64,000 nucleotides of DNA from Thalia democratica (Eukaryota), in contig OZ241832.1 in assembly GCA_965202585.1 (NCBI GenBank), positions 38,316,001-38,380,000 on the forward strand. Reading direction: 5' to 3'. The position numbers were made by a program, and so were the translations under genes. Below the pieces are notes generated by a model. The model was not told the DNA's origin, did no database searches, and saw nothing but the letters and a program-made list of their open reading frames with translations. This document shows, piece by piece, positions 38,101 through 63,729 of the stretch (positions within the stretch are counted from its first letter, which is position 1; every line of letters starts with the position of its first letter).

Positions 38101-41100
38101 CTTTTAACTTCATCAGATGAAAAGTGTGATAGGGCAACCAACAAATGAAGAAACATGATACCATGTAAATTACCATTCTCGTAACCCGTTTTCTTTTTCT
38201 TTCTGCCTTTATTTAATAATCGAACTTCAGAGTACTGAATTTAATTTTTTAAATTTAAAGACAAATGAAGTAAAACAAAAATTATAAGTGTTTAATACGT
38301 ACAAAACTTGTTTTAGGATAATCGCTGCTAACTTATCCAATTAAAGGTCAAAGTGAATTTAAATTTTTGAACTAAGCTAATAATTTTGCTCAATTAAGCA
38401 TATTAAGCGTTTTGTTCGACTCAAAGATAAAGCTCAAGATCAAAAACTTAAAGTAAGACAAATGTTTTACGAAAAAAAAACCAAAGCAAATCAAAACCTA
38501 TAGAAACAAGAGCGTAAAGTAAAATCTTATTTTTAAAATCATATCCGTGTTTACATAACAGAAGTTGCAGATACTGTTTAAACTTCAGTCGTTTTTGTTT
38601 ATATTTAAGCCTATCTGCTGTGGGAGTGCTAACAGCTTTATAAGTTTTGTGCGACTGACCCATTGTTATAGTAACAGTAACCGCATTATTGCTATTTCAA
38701 AGTCTGCAAGTTGTTTTTATTTTCGCATAGTTTGTGTTGTTGTTTAGACTTAAGTTGCTTGAAGTTGTAAGCTGTTTTGATGCGTTGCGGCTTACTTTGA
38801 TGTGTACAGGAGACAAATTTTAGATTCAAATTTTTTTTTAATAAATAAAACATAAACACTGTTTAGTCAGCTTCACAAAAAAATTGAATTTAAAAATGCG
38901 CGAAAGTTTTCTACTTTTTACTTGTTATGCAAAGTTTTTTTTTATGAAGTTGATTATTACAAAAGTTAAGTAGGTTAAAGGAGCACAAAATGTAACGGTA
39001 GAAGTAGTTTTACTAAAAAAGACATAGTCCTCAAAATTTTTATCTTTATCTTAAAATCCTTTTTAACCAGAAGTTGAGACTTTTGTAAATTATAAAATCT
39101 TATTTTATCAAATTTGTTCAAATATTACATAAAAATGCTAATAATTCTAATTTCATTTAGAGTAAAGCTTTTTTACTTAATAAGTCGATTAACAAAGTAT
39201 GTTTTTAAAACAAAGTAAACATTTCAATAGTTTGATAAGTTATTTACAAAAAATTGCTTACCGAAGCAGACCTGACTTTCATATCACTTGGCTTGAGTAT
39301 TTTTACTATGATGAGCGTATAGCAAACTGTTATAATAAGAAGAGGTATGACGAAACCGCTGAAAAAGAAGAACAGTATAAATCCTCTAAAAGTGCTGTTC
39401 TCTGGATGTGCACAGGTGTTGTTTTGTGAAATTGGATTTATAAGTTCAGAGTATGGAACTTCCGATGCATCTGTGTTTTTTTTAATCAATTTTTTATACA
39501 GATTTCACTATCTATCATCACATAGAACTAAAAAAATAAATTTTTGTTAGCTTCTTTGTAAATTAAGATAAAACTATTTGGTTAAAAAATATGAAAGTTT
39601 AAAAAAAACAGTTTTATTATATTTAACAGTTCAAATATATTATATACGACTATACTAAAATAAGCTTAAATAAACAATTTTTTATGAAAATGTTGTAGAG
39701 GTTGGCAACTATTACAGTCAGCCGGCTAATTTTACTACAAAAAAGTCTTTTGCGGGTCGGACATGTTACGCGGGCCGCGTCATTTGTATATGCATCCTTT
39801 ATTAAAAATTCTTAAAAAAAAATGTTTTTGAAATATTAGTATATTTATTAATGTGTACTAAAAGTCAAGTTGTGAGCATATTTAAAACAATTGTCCTAAA
39901 AAACTAAGTTTTATTTGATTGAACAAGATGCTTTTGAGCCTAGAGGCACGCCACAGGCCGTACGTTATCCACCTCTGAACTTACGTTAACTATATGCATT
40001 TCTTTATAACTTAAATAGGAAACTTAAACGAAAACCAAAAACCTGTATTTCCAACATTGTATTCGTCACCGTAATCACTATAATAGTTAGCGTAAGGTTG
40101 GTTATCAGGTTCAACTTGTCTTTCTATGTGATCAAAAAAGTGTTCTATACAACTTTGATTCTCTTTTTTATCGTAAGAAAACTTTTCTTTTTCATTAAAT
40201 GAGTCGTCATAGTAAGAGTTAGGGCCAAGGTGCTCCCATTTTAACGGCTTTTTGAAGTTGAGAGAGCACATGCCATCTGTCAGATAAACAAATGTAAATA
40301 TTTTTCAAGTACAATATTGATAAAAAATATTTGTTGTACAGTTTATAGGTAAATAACATTAGAAAGTAAAAACAGTTTCAATTAGTAAACAATTCAAAGT
40401 GTATAAGTTTTGACTGAAATGTAAATAATCAACAACTTTGCAAATGAAAAACCAAATGTACCTGAAAAATGTAAAAACTAGGTTTCATATTGAGAACTTT
40501 TTTAAGCTGTTATAAAATTAATGTTCTTAAACTTAGTTTTTTTTTATTGAAGTAATAGTGAAAAAGTAATAGTAAAAATAGTAATAGTTTAAACTTATTT
40601 AGCAATAAAGAAACATTTTTCCAGATTTTTTTAAAACTAAATATGCTTTCATCAGTAAAACAATTTAACAACCTGAGTCAATATAAATGTTCATTAAAAT
40701 AGGAACTGTCATCACCAGAGATATAATCCAAATAGCTGCGCATACCTACAATATAACACCTAGATAAGAATTCAAACTAAAGGTCAAAACTTAAAGTTCT
40801 AAATAATTTATTATTAAAAAAAATAAAAAGGTATATTTACAATAAAAAACTGACTTACAAAAGAAGTTGTTCTTGCAGTTCTGTATTTAACCGAGCTAAC
40901 TACGTGGACGACAGCAAAGTATCTATCAACAGACATGGCTGTCAAAAAACAAACACTCGAATAATAATTGTGGTCTTTCATCGCTTCTACGATCTGTAGG
41001 TTTTTGTAATCATTGAATAAATAAAAAAATGCGATCAATTCATTTAACTACGGTCTAAATTTGTTGAATTTTTGCAAAAATGTCAACTGGGAGGTAAAAT

Positions 41101-44100
41101 TTTATTGAACAAGATTTTAAAAAGTGTTAAAAAAAGCTAAAAGATTTAAACACTTAGTTATAAAATTTAGAATTATATACAACAGCTTGTGTTAAAGATG
41201 TTAGTAAAAATTTTATAAGAGCATTGAATTGCTAATTCTTTGCTAAATTAGTTGTATACTAGCTATAATTATCAAAAATTTAATTTTTTGTTATTGATTA
41301 AAATATAGAATCTAAACATACTCACTTATCATTAACGTTTGTATTTTATCATGAATATAATTAAGGTCTTAGACAAATATTTTCTTATTATGTTTCAAAT
41401 AACTTTAAACTTTGACAGACTAAAGTTTAAATAAAATATTAATGTAAAACATTTTTTTTACTCTACTATATCTTTAACTTTTACCTTATTTGACTGACTT
41501 AGTCAAACACTTTTTAAGATAAAACAATATATTTCTTTTTGTGAGATGGTAAAATATTTAGTGGTGATTTTCTATAGTTACTATTAAGCTTAGATTTCCC
41601 ACGTCAAAAGCAGCTTTAAGAAGAGAAATTCCTAAGTTATAACTTATTACTTCCTTAATAACGAGATTTTATCAGCAGTCATTCAACTCCCTGGATTAGA
41701 ACTACTTTTGGTCAAAATATTGTTGACTACTTTTTACGAATGACTATAAAAACATTCCTTAACATTGATAGGCAGTAAGTTTTTATTGAAAATAGTTACA
41801 AAAACTACATTAAAACTTTAAGGCATATAGAGATGATTGAATTTGGACGTGTTAAATATTTCCATTCAGGTTATCTAGTTGTAAATACTAAAAAGGTTGT
41901 ACAAGTTTTTAAACCTTTTAATTATCTCAAATTTCATTTAAAAGTTATAGTTTTTTGACAACAATATTAAAAATTGTTAAAGTTTCTTGTAAAGACTTAA
42001 TTGTATACAAATTTATACCAGAAAATTAAATAACAATATTAAAAAATTACGGTTAAGCTTTTTTTAGTTGTTGTTTAGTCAACTATAGAATTTATGCTTA
42101 ATGTAATAAAAAGTAGCCAAATGAAATATACCTAATTCAAAACTAACAATCAAATAAACTATGATTAACAAACTTTTTTTTTTCTTATCAGAAAACTTAG
42201 CTAAATCCCTTTCGTAGATCAATCACTTATAAGCATGAGCTGTCACAGATAGATTTTATCAAATAGTAAAAGCTTTATTCGTAAAGCCGTTATTGCAAAA
42301 AGTGAATACACGTGTAATCAAAGATAAGAATAAAACATTTATCGAGAGTTATAAGGATTTTATAATAAATTATAAATTACTTGTAAAAGTAAAACAAATT
42401 TTATAAAAATTTTTAAATGCCGTCTTTAGTTAAACATTCATTGTGACCCTTTCAAAGCATTTTATTGTACTAACTTCTAAATGAATTAATCAAAGCTGTT
42501 TGCATATACATATCTGTCTTATTAATCATAGTGCTATAGCTAAAATAGAAAGGGGTCAAAAGAGATCATTCTTATTTGAAATACATTGAATAAGTAAGTT
42601 TACATCATAGCTTTTAGGCAAAAAGAAAGATTTTAATTCAAGTTAAAAGTGAGATTGTTTTTACTGTTTATATGTGTACTAATTTTGATTTTTGTAACTA
42701 GACAGTTTAAAAGTAAAACTTTCTTTATAAATAAAGAAATATTTTTGTGATATTTTTTTATAATGCATACGAAAACCACAACAATTGAGTTTATAGAAGA
42801 TTGATTAAACAACCATACGTCCTGAAAAATACATAAGTATACTTAAATTTCAATAAAATACACTTTATTTTTTTTAATCTATACAGGCATTTGAAAAAGC
42901 TTGTACTACTTATTTATCGTCTTCAAAAATAAAGTTTTATATTAAAGTTAGGATTTAATAAAATGTTTTCAAAAGTACATTATCACTTAATAAAATACCC
43001 ACTGGATACTTTACTTTACCTTTATCTACGTTTCGTATCTATTGAATAATACGTTTTCATGGTATGTAAGAAATTTTATACTTCTAATTTTAAGTATTGT
43101 AAGAACAACTTGGTACATTTATTGGAAAGATTAAAGTTTTGCTGATTTAATGCATAAGCTAAACAAATATTTTTTTTATAGTTAATGAAAAAAGTTACTT
43201 AATTAGTTTTAAAATTACCTTCATATATTATAGTTGGTAGTAAACTTTAAAACGTGTCAAAAATGACTTTTTAATAACTATAAAACTTATTGTTTATTTA
43301 TTTTCATGTAGTGATAATTACAGCCTAGACATCTTTTCTTATCTGTATTTACCTAATAAATGTCCATATAAGTTCATAACTTGAATTTTTAATAATGTAT
43401 ATATTATGTAGACTTAAAAAAAAGAGTTTGTAGTTTAAAGTCAAACTATTTTTACTGGTTATTTTACATGTTTGTACTAATAAACTCTGAACAGTAACTT
43501 CCTTTACTAATTAAAATGCAGTAAACAAAATTTATATTAAAGTATCATATCAATTTAGGTTGTTTAGATAAGTTTTGTGAACTTGAAAAACTAATTAAAT
43601 CTAAGTTGAAATCGTGGTAGTTTAATACAAAAAAGTTAACTGTGAACTTTTGCTCATTTACTAGTTGAAAATTAATTAAAGACTTACAAGTGAAACTTTA
43701 AATCATAAAGTATATTTGTCGCTATCTTTTTTTAATTTTAATAATTTAAAGATAAGATTTTAACGCTAAAAGTTTTCAGTAGAAACATTTGTTGGTGAAA
43801 ATATTTTAGTATAATACTTGGTACATAGTGTACTATTTTTTAATTTATATAAAAATATAGATATTTTTTTGAACAATATAAAACTTATTAATGGTGTATT
43901 GTTTATTTTCACTTATAATTTATTGTTACTTGAGTACATAAGTTGTTATTATTACCTTTAACTATAAGTTAGTTTGTATGTTACTATATAAATGATATAA
44001 CCAACTATTTTTGTGAAGATAACGAAAAACTTGTTTAGTTTAATCCTTTATATACTTTTAAAAACTAAAAGGACCTTTTGTTGATATAATTAGTATACTA

Positions 44101-45772
44101 ATACTTTATGGGATATTAAAGTAGTACGATAATTTAAAATTACCATTATATTTTTAAGTAAGTATATAATAAAAGCTTTAAAATAGTTTTTTTTATCTAT
44201 TTTATTTAATATTTAGCTCGTTATGGAGTTCTTTTTTATCACTTGCTAAAATTCTTATTTTCAACCTTAATAATACCTTAATCTCAACTTAATTGAGCTT
44301 TATAGTTTCATAAAAGTAATATACATAGTTTTATATTACATTTAACTAATTTAATTAGTTTTAGTAATTTCGTTAAAGATATTTTTTTCTTATTAAGCTC
44401 ATTTTTTTTAGCTCTCCCTATCTTTGGTATAAAAGATAAATGTTTAAAACTTAATACTTTGAATTTAACGCTTCAGCTTTGTTTAAAAATCAATTTCAAG
44501 TATTTAGTAGTACTAGCTATTGTTTTGTATATTTTCTAAATTGCTGTTTATATACTTTTAGCTTTTCACTAACTTTGCACATAGTTAAACCAAACGGCCA
44601 TCTTTTAAGAAATCTTTGAGCTACCATGAAAGGAAGAGTACAAACAAAAAGTAGATCAGCCAGAGCCAAATTCCAGATATAAAAGTTTGCAACAGTTTTT
44701 GTCGTCTCCTTGCCCCCAAATATCACAAAAAGCACCTGAAGTTGAAAAATGGTTTGTTTGTATTTAAAACGACACAAAAATACAAACTTTGGTAAAGAGG
44801 ACGTTGTAAAAACTTGTCAACGAAGTTCAGTTTACTTAAACTTCAAGTATGTTTTGTAATTAAAATTAAGGATTCTGAGCTTTACTATGTATAACTTTTT
44901 TTTCAATAGATCTCTTAACTTCTTAAACATAGACGTTTGAACTATATATTTTGTTTTAAAATCTTACTAATATGTTTAGTGCTTACGTTAATGTAGTAAA
45001 AATTACACACAAGACATATTACAGTAACAACTTTTTAATTTTAAGTCAATGAATACTAAAAGTTTTATTTTTGACAAGACTTGATGCTTTTCTTGTAAGT
45101 TCTGTGTTTTTTAAATATGTACAAAATCATACACTAAATTATTTACGCTATTTTAAGTTATAAATAGCTTTTAATATTTATTTATAGAATAGGTTTATCT
45201 GAAGTATTTGTTATGTAAATGTAATTATATTAATGTAATAAATCTTATATACATGTATATGCAAGTATTTCACACTAAAATAGCTCATAAAGTTAACATA
45301 CTCTTCAAAAACTTTAAAACATAAAAAGAGTTAGTTTTGTTTCAGGAAATAAAATAAAGTTAAATTTTATATTTTGTTCGCAGTAAACTTCAGTTTTAAG
45401 CAACTATGTATATATATATATATCTGTCAAATTGATAGTCTTTTTTTTAAATTTAAATAGATTTTTAATGCAGCACAAAACTAAAGTGAAAAAATACAAT
45501 TTCAAAATTTTACCAACCAGACCATTACAAACTATTCCAACGAGTGCTAATACGACATAGGCGCTTGCTGTAAAAATTTCTTCAGTGTTAAGCTCACTAA
45601 GATCAACTAGATTTTGTTGATGTTCCTTGTAATATTTTTCAAAATGTGTGCAGTTAATATCAAAAGTGAAGTTTTTACCACTACCGTCATCAATATCGTA
45701 ATTTTGGTAGCTGTCGTAATTGTAATATTCCCCGTAATCTTCAAGAGGATTTAAACCAGTTTCAGTATCCAT
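35147..45772 (-). CDS. Class A gamma-group GPCR, paralogue B; 9 exons, 481 aa, convergent with paralogue A
   Basis: Exons 45772-45518, 44735-44574, 40993-40859, 40745-40673, 40276-40043, 39470-39262, 38206-38031, 35540-35412, 35219-35147. Intron phases match paralogue A, and exons 2, 3, 4 and 7 have identical lengths (162, 135, 73, 176). Motifs SVDRY, CWLPYH, NSCLNPILYTFMGQNFK. Confidence 0.92.
36015..37612 (+). mobile_element. 5'-truncated Penelope-like element (GIY-YIG remnant, 3' UTR and hammerhead-like motif) with an inverted 3'-end copy at its 5' side; interrupted by a MITE
   Basis: 36132-36466 translates, with one frameshift near 36268, to NVVYIFKCHCGNDYVGQTSQRFHVRREQH..SSIHQHLLNNPVCAENYLDNRFEILSRARNTYDLSVLEPLFIRTREPKICKQ..LYK*. 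36015-36122 is the reverse complement of 36723-36783 joined to 37566-37612. Confidence 0.85.
36784..37563. mobile_element. 780-bp TA-flanked MITE (Tc1/mariner/pogo-type ends)
   Basis: TA|CAGTAACCTCTCGCATCTTTACGCAC ... GTGCGTAAATAAGCGAGAGGTTATTG|TA; internal repeats of CTCTCGTATCTTTACG. Confidence 0.8.
39695..39790. mobile_element. hAT (Charlie/Tip100-like) MITE fragment
   Basis: AGAGGTTGGCAAC..GCGGGTCGGA..GCGGGCCGCG resembles CAGGGGTCGGCAA..GCGGGCCGC-type hAT ends. Confidence 0.4.
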
Positions 45773-46283
45773 GTTAAAGTTAAAGTGTCTACGTTTAAAA
45801 ATAAAAAATACTAAAAATTTGTATCTCAATAACAGAGAAGTATTGACACGTATAATATACTACACTAAAACCTTTTAGGTTAGATTACTTCTTCAGGTAA
45901 AAACTAGTTTTTTTCTCTCTAGCTACCTACTGTGCACAGTTTTCAGAGAGTTTAAGAACCCTTTTATAATAAAAAGCTGTTTTTTTAAACTATACTTATC
46001 TTAAAAATTTCTTATCTAATAAACATTTCGTTTTGTTTATACGTAAAGTTTTCTTCCATAATATTTTAAGGTGACAAATTTACTACTCATAATGTTATAA
46101 ACGTATTGTTATCTTTTGTCTGATGGTAAAATTTAATAAACATTAAAGTGTTATTTTTCTATAGTTTTTGGTCTATTGAATTTTTAAACTAATATGAAAA
46201 AACGCTTATTTATTTTGATGAGTGACCGACTAAAAGCATCACATATTTAAACTATTTTTTTATATAGTTAGCTAGACCATATT

Positions 46284-51369: not shown

Positions 51370-51903
51370 ATGGTTAGATTTATCAGTTCTCTGCTATTCG
51401 GCTGCTTCAAAAAGCAAAAATCTTCTATTAAACAGCCAGAATATATTACTAAATTGAAGATAAAAGTTGTGCCACTGACATTAACACCAACTAGTACATG
51501 GAAAGATGAAAATCTCAGTGAATTCTTATTGCTTTTGGCTGTCACTGATCAAACCTCAAATCACGAATTGAACGAGGCTTTTTTAGAATCTCTTGAATAT
51601 ACGGAATAAAACTTGGACAAAAGACTTTCAAAAACAATCTATGAAGCTCCAGCGAAGAAAAATGTTTCATTTAATTTAAATGAAAATATAGAGTATGAAG
51701 AAGATACTGAATTGAAGAAGGAGCTAGTAGATTACAGAAAAAGTGTTGGGATGAATTTATATTATTATTTCACAAGAATGGAGAGAGACGAAAGACGTGA
51801 GAGGATAAGAAGACTGAAGAGAGTTCTAACTTATCCATGGATAGCTATGGCGAACGTTTTTAGAGCAAGGAGGCGTAGAACTGTGTTGGAGGATAACATC
51901 TGA
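51370..51903 (+). pseudogene. Intronless 177-codon frame with one in-frame TAA (51607-51609); C-terminal half resembles the PP1c-binding module of PPP1R15/GADD34-like proteins
   Basis: ORFs 51370-51609 and 51613-51903 are in the same frame (GAA TAA AAC TTG). RVxF-type motif KKNVSF is followed by YRKS..MERDERRERIRRLKRVLTYP. The conserved Trp and RF of PPP1R15 are not evident, so the family call is tentative. Confidence 0.5.
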
Positions 51904-53891: not shown

Positions 53892-54292
53892 TTTATCATG
53901 ATTTGAATTTACGTTAAATAAAACAGAGATTTAAACGTTTTATTACATGATTACGTTAATTTATCTTTTTTTAAAAGTCTTTTTGATTTAAACTTTAAAT
54001 GTTAAATTTTTGAAAACAGTATAGTTCATAACTTTATTAGACATTAATTGTAAAAACCATACAAATACAGCTTTCTTTTTATCTAAATAAAAGTTTTATT
54101 TTGTATAATTAGTTAACGCTATAGGCTTACAAACTTTTTTAAAGGTTTTAAAAACTATAGAATGTCTCAGGTTAGTTTAAAGTCACTCAGGATAGTATTT
54201 AGTCATTCAAGATAATTTTTTGACTATGTTTGTTTGTTTGACTTATTAAAAGCTTTATTAAAATAAATGTTATTTTCAAGCATATATATATT

Positions 54293-54388
54293 GTTTATCC
54301 AACGATAAAAAAAGCACTCAAAAAATTTGGTCTAAGGACCTGGTGTACGAAAAAAACCTTTCAGCTATCGAGTCATACACCACGCATA
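54293..54388 (+). repeat. R95 copy 5
   Basis: AACGATAAAAAAAGCACTCAAAAAATTTGGTCTAAGGACCTGGTGTACGAAAAAAACCTTTCAGCTATCGAGTCATACACC. Confidence 0.85.
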
Positions 54389-56111
54389 GTCAAAATAAAT
54401 AAATACACTTTATTATTATTATTTTTATCTACAATGTTATAACTGTAGTGTTTTTAATTTATTTCATGATTAAAGTTGTTCAAATATATTAAAGCTTTAA
54501 ACAAGAGTTTTTCCAACTAAATTTTCATAGTTGCCCCTTTTTTAATGTATAAGAATTTACTTTTTTGCCTCCTTACTAGTTATTTCCTCTTGATAGCCAA
54601 AATTACCCTAAGAGGCAATATAGCATTTCGGGAGGCATTTTGGGAGCCTTTGTTTTAAGTTTTACTTTTTTAATCAAACATAAATCAATTGTTATACTCT
54701 GAATTTTACTCGTGTTAAGAATTGCCCAGTTTGTTTTAGGCAAACAAAAAAAAGATAAAACAAAGAAGTGTAGAAAAGTTAATCATTTACTGTACTAGCT
54801 TGTTTTTAAAGCCATTTTTGTTTAGTTTGCTATCGAATATAGATCAATTTTGAATTTTTTTTAATTAACATTATTTGCATTGATAAAGTTCACAGTTTTA
54901 GAAACAAACTTAGTATAAAATATTTTTGAATTTTAGATTATTGAAATTCATTTTTAATATATTTTATCTTTAAGAATATGACAGCTTCAAATTGTACTGT
55001 AAATATGACGTTTTTATTAAAACATTTATAGTTTAAGTAGTAGAAAACGGTTTATTGCTCTTTGTCCTAATAAAAAAACTAAACAAAAACTTTTTGATAA
55101 GTAAAAAATTAACATTTATCCTTCAGAGAGACTTTGTAGATTTTTTAGATTGTCCGTAAACTTTGATAAAAAAAATATCTTATATGAAAAATAAAGAACT
55201 TGCAAGATAAACTAAAGTTATGAAATAAACTAATAGTAGAAAAAAATAATGTTTGACCTTTATTAATTGTATTTGACCTTGAACTTAAACATAAAAGTTT
55301 TAAGTAAATATTTTTCCTTAAACTGATTTTCTTTATTTAGTTGTACAAACATTGGATAATTGTTTTTTAGTAAAAACTTTGTAAGGACAGTGTAAGAAAA
55401 AGTATAAATGTAAAAACTAATACTTTTGAATAGCTCCTTTTTTTATTTCGTTTCATAAGTTTTCTAATTTATAAAAATTTTTCCACAAAAGGTTAAATTC
55501 GTTTTTAAAGTAGTACCTTAACTTGTCAAATCAACTGATTTATTTATTTTAAAGGTTGTTATAAAAATATTTATTTATTCGTTTTAGAATTATACAAAAT
55601 TTAGCTGTCGTAGTTTATAACTTTACTTACAAAGTAGTCAAATTAAAAAAAAAACTTATTACAAAATTTTAAAGCAAACTGTAAAAACTTTTAACGAACT
55701 TTTAAATTTAGTTAAACACGCAATTAAACACTTTCATTCAAGATTACACATTTAATGATTGTCCTTTGAGAATGATAAGTTGTTATTATTCGATTTATTC
55801 TTTTGATGTTTAAAAACAAGATATCATTTAAGTAACTTATTGGTAAATTTTAGACTCTTGATTTAACCAATATTTGTATAAATCTCCTTAAAGACATTTA
55901 AGTCGAGAACTTTAAATTGTTTGATTTAAAACAAGTTACATTATTATTACTCTTGATTTAAGGTAAGTTTGTTCTAAACTTGAGTACTTTAACTAAATGA
56001 TTCTGAAATTAGTTTAGTTATTACGTTTTAAGCCTATAAAAACATATAATTATATCAAACAAATTTTAAAATATAAAATTTGAAGTTTTAAAACAGATTT
56101 GTTAATCAAAT

Positions 56112-58879
56112 ATGAAAGTACTATATTGGTGTTTTCTTGCAATTATTCTTCTTTTCGGAGAAGGCGTAAAAGGTATGTAACTCTTGCTAAAAATAAAAAC
56201 ACATCTCATTTTTTAGGAAAGTATAAAAGGCGAGCTATGACTTTAAGCAAACAAAATAACTTAACATATATTTACTTTCACTTTTTTAAATTAAAACTAA
56301 TACTTTATAAAGGTCTCGAATGTGGTGATAGAATTAAAGTTTTTGTGAAACTGAGTGACCCTAGTAGAGTAAGTGTGCATTTTAATTATATTTAAACTTT
56401 TATAAAACTCGTTTGTAAAATATGCCAGTTTCTTTTAACAACAAACAATATTCATTATATAAAAATTTAAAACATGTTTTTGTTATATAGAGCATTTTCT
56501 AAATTAATATACAATAATAAACTATTTTCCAAAGTTTAAATATCTTCGGAAAAATAAAAAAGGTTTTGAAAATTTTTTAAATAGTACTAAAATCAAAAGT
56601 TATGTAATCCCAACAACCAATCTTTTTGGAACTAATGAAAAACATAATTTTTTAGTAAAATACAGTTTGAAGTCCTAAATAATTTACATATTATACTAAA
56701 AACTCATTCTAAATAAAAATTGTTATACAAAAGCTTGGTTTGATAATAGCTATAGGATCTAATATACTAAAATAGATTAGGAAAAACGTGATCATAACAC
56801 TTATTCATAAACTTCTCTAAAAGTATTTAAAAATAATATAAAAACTTTACTTATCAATATTTTAAAACAACAATATCAATATTTTAACTTGTTTAAGTTT
56901 ATTTTTATCACCGCTAAAATTAATTTAAACTAGGGGTAATTACGAGCACATTAAAATAAGTATTCATTTTTAAAGTAACTTTTAATTTAAGGTTTTCTAA
57001 AATTGTGAATATCTTGTATGTGATGTCACTTATTCGAAGTTTAAAGTTTTGTATTGATTTATTAGTTTTTTAAAGCATTCTTTCTCAAAGTGTGCACTTA
57101 TGATTCTACATAGTGTACATAGTTTATATTTCACTGTTGAGAAAATTTAAAAGAGTACTAAATATAATATTAAAACAAAATAGTTATATACCATATTTTG
57201 TTTTCGAAAACTGTTAATTAACTTTTATATATATATTGTTTACAATAAAATCAGTTTAAGTAGTAACAAATTAGACAGTAAGTTTTCTTGTCTGTACATA
57301 TACCTTTTTCAAGTAAACCTACTGTGCACAAATTTATAAAAAGCTTCCAGAAGTACTGCTTTATAGTACATGAATTTTTACTTTGTATATTTTGACATCT
57401 TACTTAAATTAAGATAAAAACTTATAAACTTTGTTAACTTTTTTTAAGTTTGATGATAACGAATATTACTTGTTCCAATGTCTGACTTCTTATGCAGTTA
57501 GGGATTACTGTGAATCGATCGGCTGTATATCTTCGTGAGTTTTTTACCTGAATTTTTAAAAGCGTCAAAGCTTATTAAAAGGTTTCTTAAAATAAAAGTA
57601 ACTTTAAGTTTTATTTTACCTATTTAGGTGCTTAAAGTTTTTGGAAAGATTATCTGTATTTAGGTATTTTAACGTATACTATCAACTAAAATATTTAACA
57701 TTAAGAGATGTGACGGCTGATGATGTTGAAATAACTAACAAAACAGAGAGAGTTTCATTCTGCATGAAAGTAGACGGATTTCCTAACGACATTGTTCTCA
57801 CTTCAATCAAGTAAGTTAAACATTTATAAGTTATACATTATTTGGATAAAAACTTATTTTTAGCTTTAAAGTGCATTGTATCATTACAAAACAAAAAATA
57901 TTATTAAGTAAATTTACTTTGTATAACAGTTTTATCTGAAATTTGAAAGTAGCTTAAACTTTTTTTGAATTTAAGAAAATTTAATTTTTACTTTACATTA
58001 AGAGTTTTTACAATCAATAAGTTGATAACAGCATGAAGTTTATTTCTTATTAACTAATCAAAGAATCCAAAGAAAAAACTATCATTACTGTTTTAATATC
58101 TAATCTCTGTTTTTGTTAGCAATACTTTTTAAATATTAAACTAAATGAGTTTAAGAAGTGAATGATGAGAGGCCAATCTTATGATAGTTTTTTGCATACT
58201 TAATCCTCTTGTTTATAACAATAAGTAAGTTTTACTACCAAACAAACCTAAATTTCCTGACCTTTAAGCAGGTAGTTTTACAAATTAAAAACCATTTAGC
58301 TTAGAACTAATCAAACTTTTTGTTAAAAGTGGCTCTTTGGATCGATTTTATGGCGGTTTGAAGCTTGGAATGGATGTTTTTCAAGTTGAAGGAGTTGACC
58401 CGATTTTAGAAGAAGACCCTGAACCTAACTTTCCAACCTGGTTGATACCGTTTATAGTAATTGCGGGTCTTGTAATAATTGCAGCACTGGTCATGGTATA
58501 CTTCAGCGTGAGAAATAAGTTAGTTTTTACGTAGGTAAATATTCTATTTCGAATATTTAATTTATGTTACCATTTCAATTTAAAATATTCAGATTTTAGT
58601 GTCAAGGTAAGTTAAAGATTACTTCTAAGTGAAAATTTTTACTAGCTTTACAGATTTTTTTTAGCTATTATTAATAGTTTTACTTACAAAACAAAAACAA
58701 CGCTGTTATTATTTAGTCAACTATCATATACAATAAGTATAGTTAACAAAAAAAAATACAGTGACAAATCATTAGAAGATGAAAAAGAATCTTTAACAGC
58801 GTCAGATGAAGAGACTGGAATAGGGTATGAGGGACCACAACAAGACATCAAAGACGAAGAACAAAGAACTGTTTTGTAA
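56112..58879 (+). CDS. CLTRN: Stand-alone collectrin (TMEM27)-like type I membrane protein; 6 exons, 204 aa
   Basis: Exons 56112-56172, 56313-56368, 57449-57534, 57706-57810, 58330-58518, 58762-58879 (phases 1,0,2,2,2). Signal peptide MKVLYWCFLAIILLFGEGVKG; RIKVFVKLSD; FDDNEYYLFQCLTSYAVRDY; DVEITNKTERVSFCMKV; GVDPILEEDPEPNFPTWLIPF followed by a TM helix; acidic tail ending EEQRTVL. These blocks match the collectrin domain of CLTRN and ACE2 (IKVRISL, WNDNEMYLF..AYAMR, RISF/RVSF, PT-L..P..P..WLI). Confidence 0.85.
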
Positions 58880-60146
58880 TTAAATACCGTTTTTTTTTTC
58901 TAGTTTTTCTGTACGTAGTTTTTTGAATGATTTTTATTTAGCGCTTTATAATTATTAGATATTTTTCTGCAAACATTAGGAGAAACCGAGTAAAAATCAA
59001 AAAAAACTTGTTAAAAACATCTAAACACCTTTTATATTTTGTTTTCTTATGATTTAAAGTAGTAGATAAGTTAAATGAAAAAAAACTTTTAAATTTTATA
59101 TTTAAATCTAGAGTGTTATAAACATTTTAACTTTAATAAAAATAATTAGAAATATGTAATTTACCTCCTTATAAACTAACAACTGTCTAAATATCCATTC
59201 AATTTTGTTAACAAAATAAAACTAACTTTAGTAAGCTTAAAGCTAAAAAATGTAAACTAAAGTCATCTTGTTTATCTAGTAATATAGTTATAAAAATTCT
59301 TGATTTGTACTCTGAAGCACAGATGTCACTTTAGTATCAACTTTAGGGCCAACATAAGTTTGTTTTTAAAGCAGAGCTATTATAAATAAATCTTTCTTAA
59401 GTCTAGCACTGCTAAATTTTATACAATTTCCACCTAATGTATCAATACTAGAAGCATTATGATTTAAGAATAGGAGAACATGTATACTATAAATTATTTT
59501 TCAAAATGTATATTTACGCGTACTTGATCAAGCAAAAAGTATATAGATAAAAAATGTTAAGATAATAAAACAGAGGACTTAAATTTGACTTGCTAAAAAA
59601 AAACTAGAATATTTTTTTAGTATGACATAGTGTTGTTTTTTGGTTTTTACATTTGTTTTAAATAACAGTGACCCGCAAAGGTTTTTTTTTATACAGTGCG
59701 GCACAATAGCAACTTTTTTAGGTAAACTGCGTAAGTATAATTTGTTATTTTATTAAATAAATTATCATGATTTAAGGTACACCTTTTAAATAGTTTAAAT
59801 TAATGTTTCGGCCTTTTTTTTAATTGCAACACTTAAAGTATCAAAATTTAGTTTTCTAAGTACTCAAAGTAATTTATCAAACAGTTTTTGTTAAGGTTAA
59901 AAACACAATTTTTAAAATTTAAGTATGCAGTTTTTTAAACAGCTAAAAAGTATAACTTATATTTGAAAAAATTGAAATGACGTTATTTTAAATACCTGCG
60001 ATTTCTTACGGTCGTTAAGTATTTATACTTAGTTTTCATACTAAATTAACATCATTGCTGTTTTAACATGGAATTTTGATAACATTTGTTCAATTTTATG
60101 GTTCTTTAAAAATGTTTGAGTGATTTATAAGTAATTATAACTAATA

Positions 60147-63168: not shown

Positions 63169-63729
63169 TTATTTAAAGTAGAATCGTCGGTTATGGGGAC
63201 AGATATTCGATAAATCTTGCCGCTTATTCAGAAGTAGGTCTTTATCTTCTGCTGCAATTACTGCTCTTTCTGTATTGCAAGTTGGGCAAATTCTACTTAC
63301 TCCGTTGGATGCATGTTTGATCTTTGAAACGATACTCCACTCCATGTTTGGCCTTTTACCGTACCTGTGAAAAAAGCTCCAGACATAATCCGATAAACGC
63401 GTGCTTTGTTTTTTATTTATATTTTTAAAAGTATGTTTATGATTAGCATATCTATCCTTGAAACTACCTGCTGTACTTCCGATATAAATTTTATCTGGGC
63501 CCTTACTTTCAACTTTAACTTTATAAATTACATTTTTAATTAAACAATTACCTTTTAATGGGCAGTTATCTTTGTTTAGTTTACGGCAATTACATGTTTT
63601 AGGCATACTTAACTTATTACTAATAGGGTTAGTTGGTTTTGAATATTTATTTATAGTTTTATTGTTATGCATTTCACTTATACTTTTAGCGCTATTATCA
63701 CTTACTTGTTCTAAGTTTTCTTTTATCAT
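63169..63729 (-). mobile_element. Intact GIY-YIG endonuclease domain ORF of a Penelope-like retroelement; no RT within the window
   Basis: CNCR..CPLKGNCL..NVIYKVKV..IYIGST..FKDRYANH..STRLSDYVW..EWSI..ICPTC.TE..LLNKRQDL..CPH: the Cys-rich GIY-YIG pattern of PLE C-termini. Confidence 0.85.

Follow-up and report, generated by a model that had tools for sequence, protein, structure and literature searches.

Vertebrate ACE2 is a fusion of an ACE peptidase domain with a collectrin domain, and the separate vertebrate collectrin (CLTRN/TMEM27) serves as an ancillary subunit of the SLC6 amino-acid transporters B0AT1, B0AT3 and SIT1. To our knowledge, a function of collectrin has been shown in vertebrates only. 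Structures of transporter complexes have located the surfaces involved: the three contacts between ACE2 and SIT1 are made by the collectrin-like domain, the extended linker that precedes the membrane and the transmembrane (TM) helix (PMC11217458), and the same three regions of ACE2 touch the transporter in the ACE2-B0AT1 complex (PMC10491607). The combination of Peptidase_M2 and Collectrin that characterizes ACE2 has been listed as a vertebrate domain-shuffling pair, with both domains present in outgroup animals (PMC11788884, Table 1, VGG01). Among tunicates, free collectrin genes are annotated in three ascidians, namely Ciona intestinalis (H2Y276, H2Y276_CIOIN, LOC100185540, P0102; 'collectrin'), C. 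savignyi (H2Z8K0, P0059) and Clavelina lepadiformis (XP_076809189.1, P0044; 'collectrin-like'). An earlier note on the DNA analyzed here, made from the sequence alone, had implied that a stand-alone collectrin outside vertebrates is a novelty, a claim that does not hold in view of these annotations. Given the sea squirt entries, the locus described below does not alter existing knowledge; a literature search returned no papers studying the tunicate stand-alone collectrin.

The window, which denotes the whole stretch of 64 kb that was analyzed, corresponds to C8:38316001-38380000 of an assembly of 802 Mb. It contains a collectrin gene on the plus strand with a CDS span of 56112-58879 (Table 1). 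Six exons, flanked by GT donors and AG acceptors throughout, are joined into a CDS of 615 nt that encodes 204 amino acids and terminates in RTVL. With a G+C content of 25% the window is very AT-rich, so chance open frames of such kind are not expected. RNA contigs from three marine libraries (metatranscriptome) cover the locus. Exons 1 to 5 (X6 record 18), 3-5 and 5-6 (X5 records 12 and 13) are spliced at the predicted junctions, and a diverged contig (X12 record 2) contains all six exons spliced together at the same sites. A join reported at 56168/56309 is the same as 56172/56313, because AAAG is common to both sides. The 3'UTR is covered by X6 record 19 and X5 record 15, which end at 59154-59159, about 20 nt behind an AATAAA at 59135. 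The locus is also present in marine metagenomes and metatranscriptomes.

Table 1. Features of the collectrin gene and its mRNA, in window coordinates.
Feature	Position	Strand	Content	Basis
AG trans-splice acceptor	56095..56096	+	mature mRNA from 56097	RNA contig X6 record 18
Exon 1	56097..56172	+	15-nt 5'UTR and CDS 56112-56172; signal peptide, aa 1-20; phase 1	reconstruction, RNA contigs
Exon 2	56313..56368	+	aa 21-39; conserved L-E-C, first beta strand	reconstruction, RNA contigs, alignment
Exon 3	57449..57534	+	aa 40-68; long helix, motif DDNEYYLFQ..Y..R.Y	
Exon 4	57706..57810	+	aa 68-103; N79-K-T sequon, RVSFC strand	
Exon 5	58330..58518	+	aa 103-166; neck end, extended linker, TM helix (~58439-58510)	
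Exon 6	58762..59159	+	CDS 58762-58879, acidic cytoplasmic tail; T-V-L 58868-58876; TAA stop 58877-58879; then 3'UTR	

The 5' end of the mRNA is defined by X6 record 18, which carries a loose end, TGGGATTCTATTTGAATA, and matches the genome only from 56095 onward. This end is the 16-nt tunicate spliced leader (SL) ATTCTATTTGAATAAG, known from Ciona (PMC1488885), joined 15 nt upstream of the ATG. The leader is absent from the 64-kb window; genome-wide, the leader followed by GT occurs in 358 copies, compared with 0 for a reversed control. The final two nucleotides of the leader are also those of the AG acceptor in the genome. The 5' end of the collectrin mRNA is accordingly assigned to 56097. The earlier note had rebuilt six in-frame exons, a protein of 204 residues and the RTVL end from the letters alone, and had taken the exon beginning at 56112 as the first coding exon; the former is borne out by RNA contigs spliced at the same junctions, the latter by an RNA 5' end that places the spliced leader just before the start codon. 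The collectrin locus is a real, transcribed gene whose mRNA is SL-trans-spliced. Elsewhere in the genome, on contig C26 (7129-84046), the spliced leader plus GT recurs every ~15,085 nt, which suggests a tandem array of SL RNA genes within a long repeat unit.

Several other features of the window were recorded. Two stretches upstream of the gene, 54290-54360 and 55867-56063, reach depth bins of ~350,000 and ~84,000 in DNA run X3, compared with ~100-500 elsewhere, and loose ends are numerous in them; both probably represent short repeats in high copy number. The second stretch is located 50-250 nt ahead of the trans-splice acceptor. Further upstream and on the opposite strand, exon-like ORFs of a rhodopsin-type GPCR were observed (40011-45829, minus strand; DRYFAV motif at 40814-41038), and a PPP1R15-like ORF pair lies at 51370-51903. 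An ORF for 186 aa on the minus strand (63169-63729) contains Cys-rich motifs and a stretch, KIYIGST...R..NH, resembling a GIY-YIG nuclease, and is possibly part of a mobile element.

The encoded protein has a hydrophobic N-terminus and a single TM helix (~W140-V163), which together give a type I membrane architecture. Six Cys residues are present, at positions 7, 24, 50, 60, 65 and 87, and the juxtamembrane stretch reads RNNDK and is not polybasic. A Pfam scan performed exon by exon, for which the gathering score of Collectrin (PF16959) is 27.1 bits, returned this family as the sole match for exon 3 (16.1 bits, HMM 19-40), exon 4 (12.2 bits, HMM 50-71) and exon 5 (28.4 bits, HMM 100-150), with HMM positions colinear with the gene order. 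The domain content described in the earlier note was thus recovered in full: a collectrin domain, recognized by the family HMM above the gathering score in exon 5 and by colinear, lower-scoring matches in exons 3 and 4, together with a signal peptide, one TM helix and the class-I PDZ-type end. The same applies to its count of five Cys residues after the signal peptide (24, 50, 60, 65 and 87) and to the missing polybasic stretch.

Database searches with individual exons and with the spliced protein lead to the same family. A phmmer search of 1.8 billion proteins with exon 5 retrieved stand-alone proteins of 202-223 aa, all of them Collectrin-positive in Pfam with scores of 54-80 bits. When five database proteins with Pfam Collectrin scores in that range were combined into an HMM, the spliced window protein reached 207 bits. 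The phmmer list was dominated by bacterial sequences, dozens of large proteins that contain many Big_13 Ig-like repeats and in which every repeat is ~35% identical to the region of the pre-membrane strand (residues 5-40 of the exon 5 peptide, 58331-58516); these were rejected as homologues, their scores being sums of weak matches, and the similarity is probably due to chance. A marine metatranscriptome protein, P0107, has the same length of 204 aa, the same start and the same end as the window protein at 91% identity and carries a precomputed PF16959 match, which amounts to an independent confirmation of the gene model.

Searches against the PDB point to ACE2. Exon 3 matched ACE2 in 27 of the 28 matches listed, at residues ~635-656, and for exon 5 the best-matching ACE2 chains gave an ungapped alignment over their residues 707-766. 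With a tunicate-only profile, all 40 matches were ACE2 (best E-value 6.5e-21, over residues 630-779). For a comparison of folds, P0107 was used as a stand-in for the window protein. Its AlphaFold model (mean pLDDT 72.8; blocks of 10 residues over the ectodomain, 21-110, average 80-91) consists of an N-terminal helix, a beta-alpha-beta-beta-alpha-beta ectodomain and a long TM helix at 139-178. In a Foldseek search of the PDB with this model, the top 19 hits were all ACE2, with E-values down to 5e-9 (e.g. 9n7d_A, rmsd 2.2 over 109 columns). The window protein is almost certainly an orthologue of collectrin. A second DNA sample (organism B) differs from the window CDS by four synonymous and two nonsynonymous changes, and among the differences listed for the diverged RNA contig six codons are synonymous and three are not; this mostly synonymous pattern fits purifying selection.

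The nearest named relatives of the window protein are the ascidian collectrins. Together with the Ciona-type spliced leader in its many genomic copies and the presence of the locus in marine samples, this points to a pelagic tunicate as the host. The ascidian collectrins share with the window protein the stand-alone organization, a length of 202-216 aa, the domain architecture and six coding exons, although sequence identity is only 32-37%. When the Clavelina and Ciona proteins were mapped to their loci, the intron phases (1,0,2,2,2) and the exon 5 of 189 nt proved to be those of the window gene. Four conserved ectodomain Cys residues and the T-x-L end are likewise common to ascidians and the window protein. 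In an alignment that includes one vertebrate sequence, Cys 24, 60, 65 and 87 are invariant or nearly so, and Cys50 occurs only in the window protein and its three closest relatives. The T-x-L terminus is found in 13/13 tunicate sequences; among 120 amniote collectrins, 106 have T-[PS]-L. In ascidians the TM helix is followed by a polybasic stretch (e.g. KKQKKK), in contrast to the RNNDK of the pelagic clade. A further ascidian feature is the aldehyde dehydrogenase gene located just upstream of collectrin in Clavelina and Ciona (L044:5780-9214 and L045:1-9244), a conserved ascidian microsynteny; near the window locus, where 13 of 92 candidates were scored, no Aldedh match was seen.

Vertebrate collectrin agrees with the window protein in domain order and length class (~222 aa) and passes PF16959. 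It likewise contains the conserved helix motif (NEEYLF..A..R.Y), the strand N-x-T-x-R-V-S-F, a linker followed by a TM helix, and T-[PS]-L at its end; identity to the window protein is ~24%. It differs in having a polybasic juxtamembrane stretch, which the window protein lacks, and the gecko collectrin, the sole vertebrate sequence in the alignment, is without three of the four Cys residues conserved in tunicates. To judge from these sequences, the polybasic stretch has been lost in the pelagic clade. In a phylogenetic tree of tunicate and vertebrate collectrins, the two groups are separated at 100/100 support, and the window protein falls within the tunicate group, apart from the ascidians, in a clade of seven marine transcript sequences (100/99). 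As tunicate, CLTRN and ACE2-domain clades come without an outgroup, they form an unrootable set that cannot order events. The conservation of intron phases across tunicates, the common T-x-L end and the polybasic loss in the pelagic clade appear to be new, as minor points.

By homology to the vertebrate systems, the window collectrin would be a trafficking and stabilizing ancillary subunit of SLC6 amino-acid transporters. The protein itself is a type I membrane glycoprotein. Its signal peptide is followed by a small 'neck' ectodomain of ferredoxin-like form, then by the extended linker, the TM helix and an acidic tail with T-V-L, of the class-I PDZ type, at its end. Linker and TM helix would bind a transporter of the B0AT1/SIT1 type, as they do in vertebrate collectrin and ACE2. 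Exon 5, the best-conserved exon, encodes two of the three regions that contact the transporter, namely linker and TM helix. On the side of the partner, the genome contains more than 20 SLC6 loci, and SIT1 and B0AT1 are the clear best PDB matches for exons at C6:41.02 Mb (gene C6:41020070-41024972; 81 and 73 bits vs 68 for the next family) and at C5:12.96 Mb (69 and 59 bits vs 50). SIT1/B0AT1-like genes, which the chaperone model necessarily presupposes, are thus available in this genome. Near-identical exons of this SIT1/B0AT-like type occur at C5:12964050-12964292 and on the 64-kb contig C318 (24163-24399), due either to recent duplication or to a haplotype that was not collapsed. A large-exon SLC6 gene at C2:50.92 Mb was also considered as a partner and rejected, as it is GABA-transporter-like.

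An alternative reading accepts the protein as a true collectrin orthologue and assigns it a main role in tunicates other than SLC6 chaperoning, so that the partnership with SLC6 would be a vertebrate acquisition; candidate roles are those of an apical scaffold with PDZ anchoring, of a factor regulating vesicle fusion or exocytosis, or of a homodimeric surface protein. The conserved T-x-L end and the acidic tail point to cytoplasmic partners, and the four ectodomain Cys residues of tunicates, three of them absent from the one aligned vertebrate, as well as the divergent juxtamembrane region, are consistent with a different role. In the same direction, the exon that encodes the extracellular loop after TM7 in the SIT1/B0AT1-like gene on C6 (L046:4446-4589) returned no SIT1 or B0AT1 match from the PDB, so the contact motif on the partner side is unconfirmed, and the searchable literature yielded no evidence of binding or transport for a tunicate collectrin. 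The missing polybasic stretch of the pelagic clade, a feature of ascidian and vertebrate collectrins, also counts against the helper reading. However, the strongest conservation between tunicates and vertebrates is seen precisely in the linker and the TM helix, two of the three contacts in the ACE2-SIT1 complex, and SIT1/B0AT-type genes co-occur in the genome. A principal role outside SLC6 chaperoning is therefore considered unlikely, but still of some weight. The window collectrin most likely acts as a helper subunit of B0AT1/SIT1-type SLC6 transporters; collectrin identity and ancillary-subunit function, taken jointly, are regarded as fairly probable.

The vertebrate ACE2 collectrin-like domain (residues ~615-805) is homologous to the window protein over the neck, the linker, the TM helix and the start of the tail and has the same fold. 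ACE2 differs in its N-terminal M2 peptidase, which the window gene lacks, and in a different PDZ-type C-terminal motif. No Peptidase_M2 exons were detected in the 64-kb window or anywhere on contig C8. The only Peptidase_M2 matches of the genome are located on chromosome-scale contigs, at C7:12.18 Mb and C1:44.43 Mb, and represent two ACE-type genes. In six-frame pieces covering the 10-13 kb that follow each of the two genes downstream, the collectrin HMM scored no higher than 5.8 bits, compared with 26-111 bits for the four larger exons of the collectrin gene, which served as a positive control. Two further Collectrin HMM matches, the only others in the genome (L002 and L003), were set aside as TM-helix artefacts and not paralogues, one being an integrin-alpha-like GFFKR tail and the other a generic TM segment. 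Collectrin is thus encoded once in this genome, by a free gene, and neither of the two ACE genes includes a collectrin domain.

The six exons could in principle be the 3' part of a fusion gene of the ACE2 type with overlooked peptidase exons. No support was found for such a gene, which is conceivable only as a rare isoform that is not trans-spliced. The spliced leader forms the start of the mRNA and is joined only 15 nt ahead of the signal-peptide ATG, which excludes upstream peptidase exons for this transcript, and the ACE2-type architecture, in which an N-terminal Peptidase_M2 and collectrin lie in one transcript, was not found at the window gene. Together with the lack of M2 matches on contig C8 and the orthologues of ~200 aa in seven marine transcript assemblies and three ascidians, this makes the fusion gene extremely improbable. 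The earlier note was accordingly right that no ACE peptidase is attached: contig C8 is free of M2, and the leader is joined 15 nt ahead of the coding sequence of exon 1. It is just as hard to credit that the Pfam match reflects spurious TM-helix similarity in an unrelated single-pass protein, as happened at L002 and L003, since exons 3 and 4 have no TM segment, yet match Collectrin and ACE2 at the right positions, and the profile match to ACE2 and the fold agree.

With the window gene established as a free collectrin, its bearing on the origin of ACE2 can be stated. The locus confirms that collectrin as a free module goes back at least to the ancestor of tunicates and vertebrates. The proposal of the earlier note, that a free collectrin predates vertebrates and could have been the donor of the ACE2 fusion, fits the domain-shuffling analysis and is plausible, although not a new idea. 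ACE2 as a fusion of the vertebrate stem is the published view (PMC11788884, 2024), which the ACE genes without collectrin domain found here support. It is quite possible, and is advanced here tentatively, that the tunicate-vertebrate ancestor already possessed a functioning chaperone pair of collectrin and a B0AT/SIT-type SLC6 transporter, PDZ anchoring through the T-x-L tail included, that ACE2 arose later from a gene copy fused behind an ACE paralogue, and that the loss of the polybasic stretch in pelagic tunicates is a subsequent remodelling of the juxtamembrane signal. The locus provides an RNA-verified collectrin gene model for a pelagic tunicate and makes it possible to ask, in a simple system outside vertebrates, whether the collectrin module served as a transporter chaperone from the outset.
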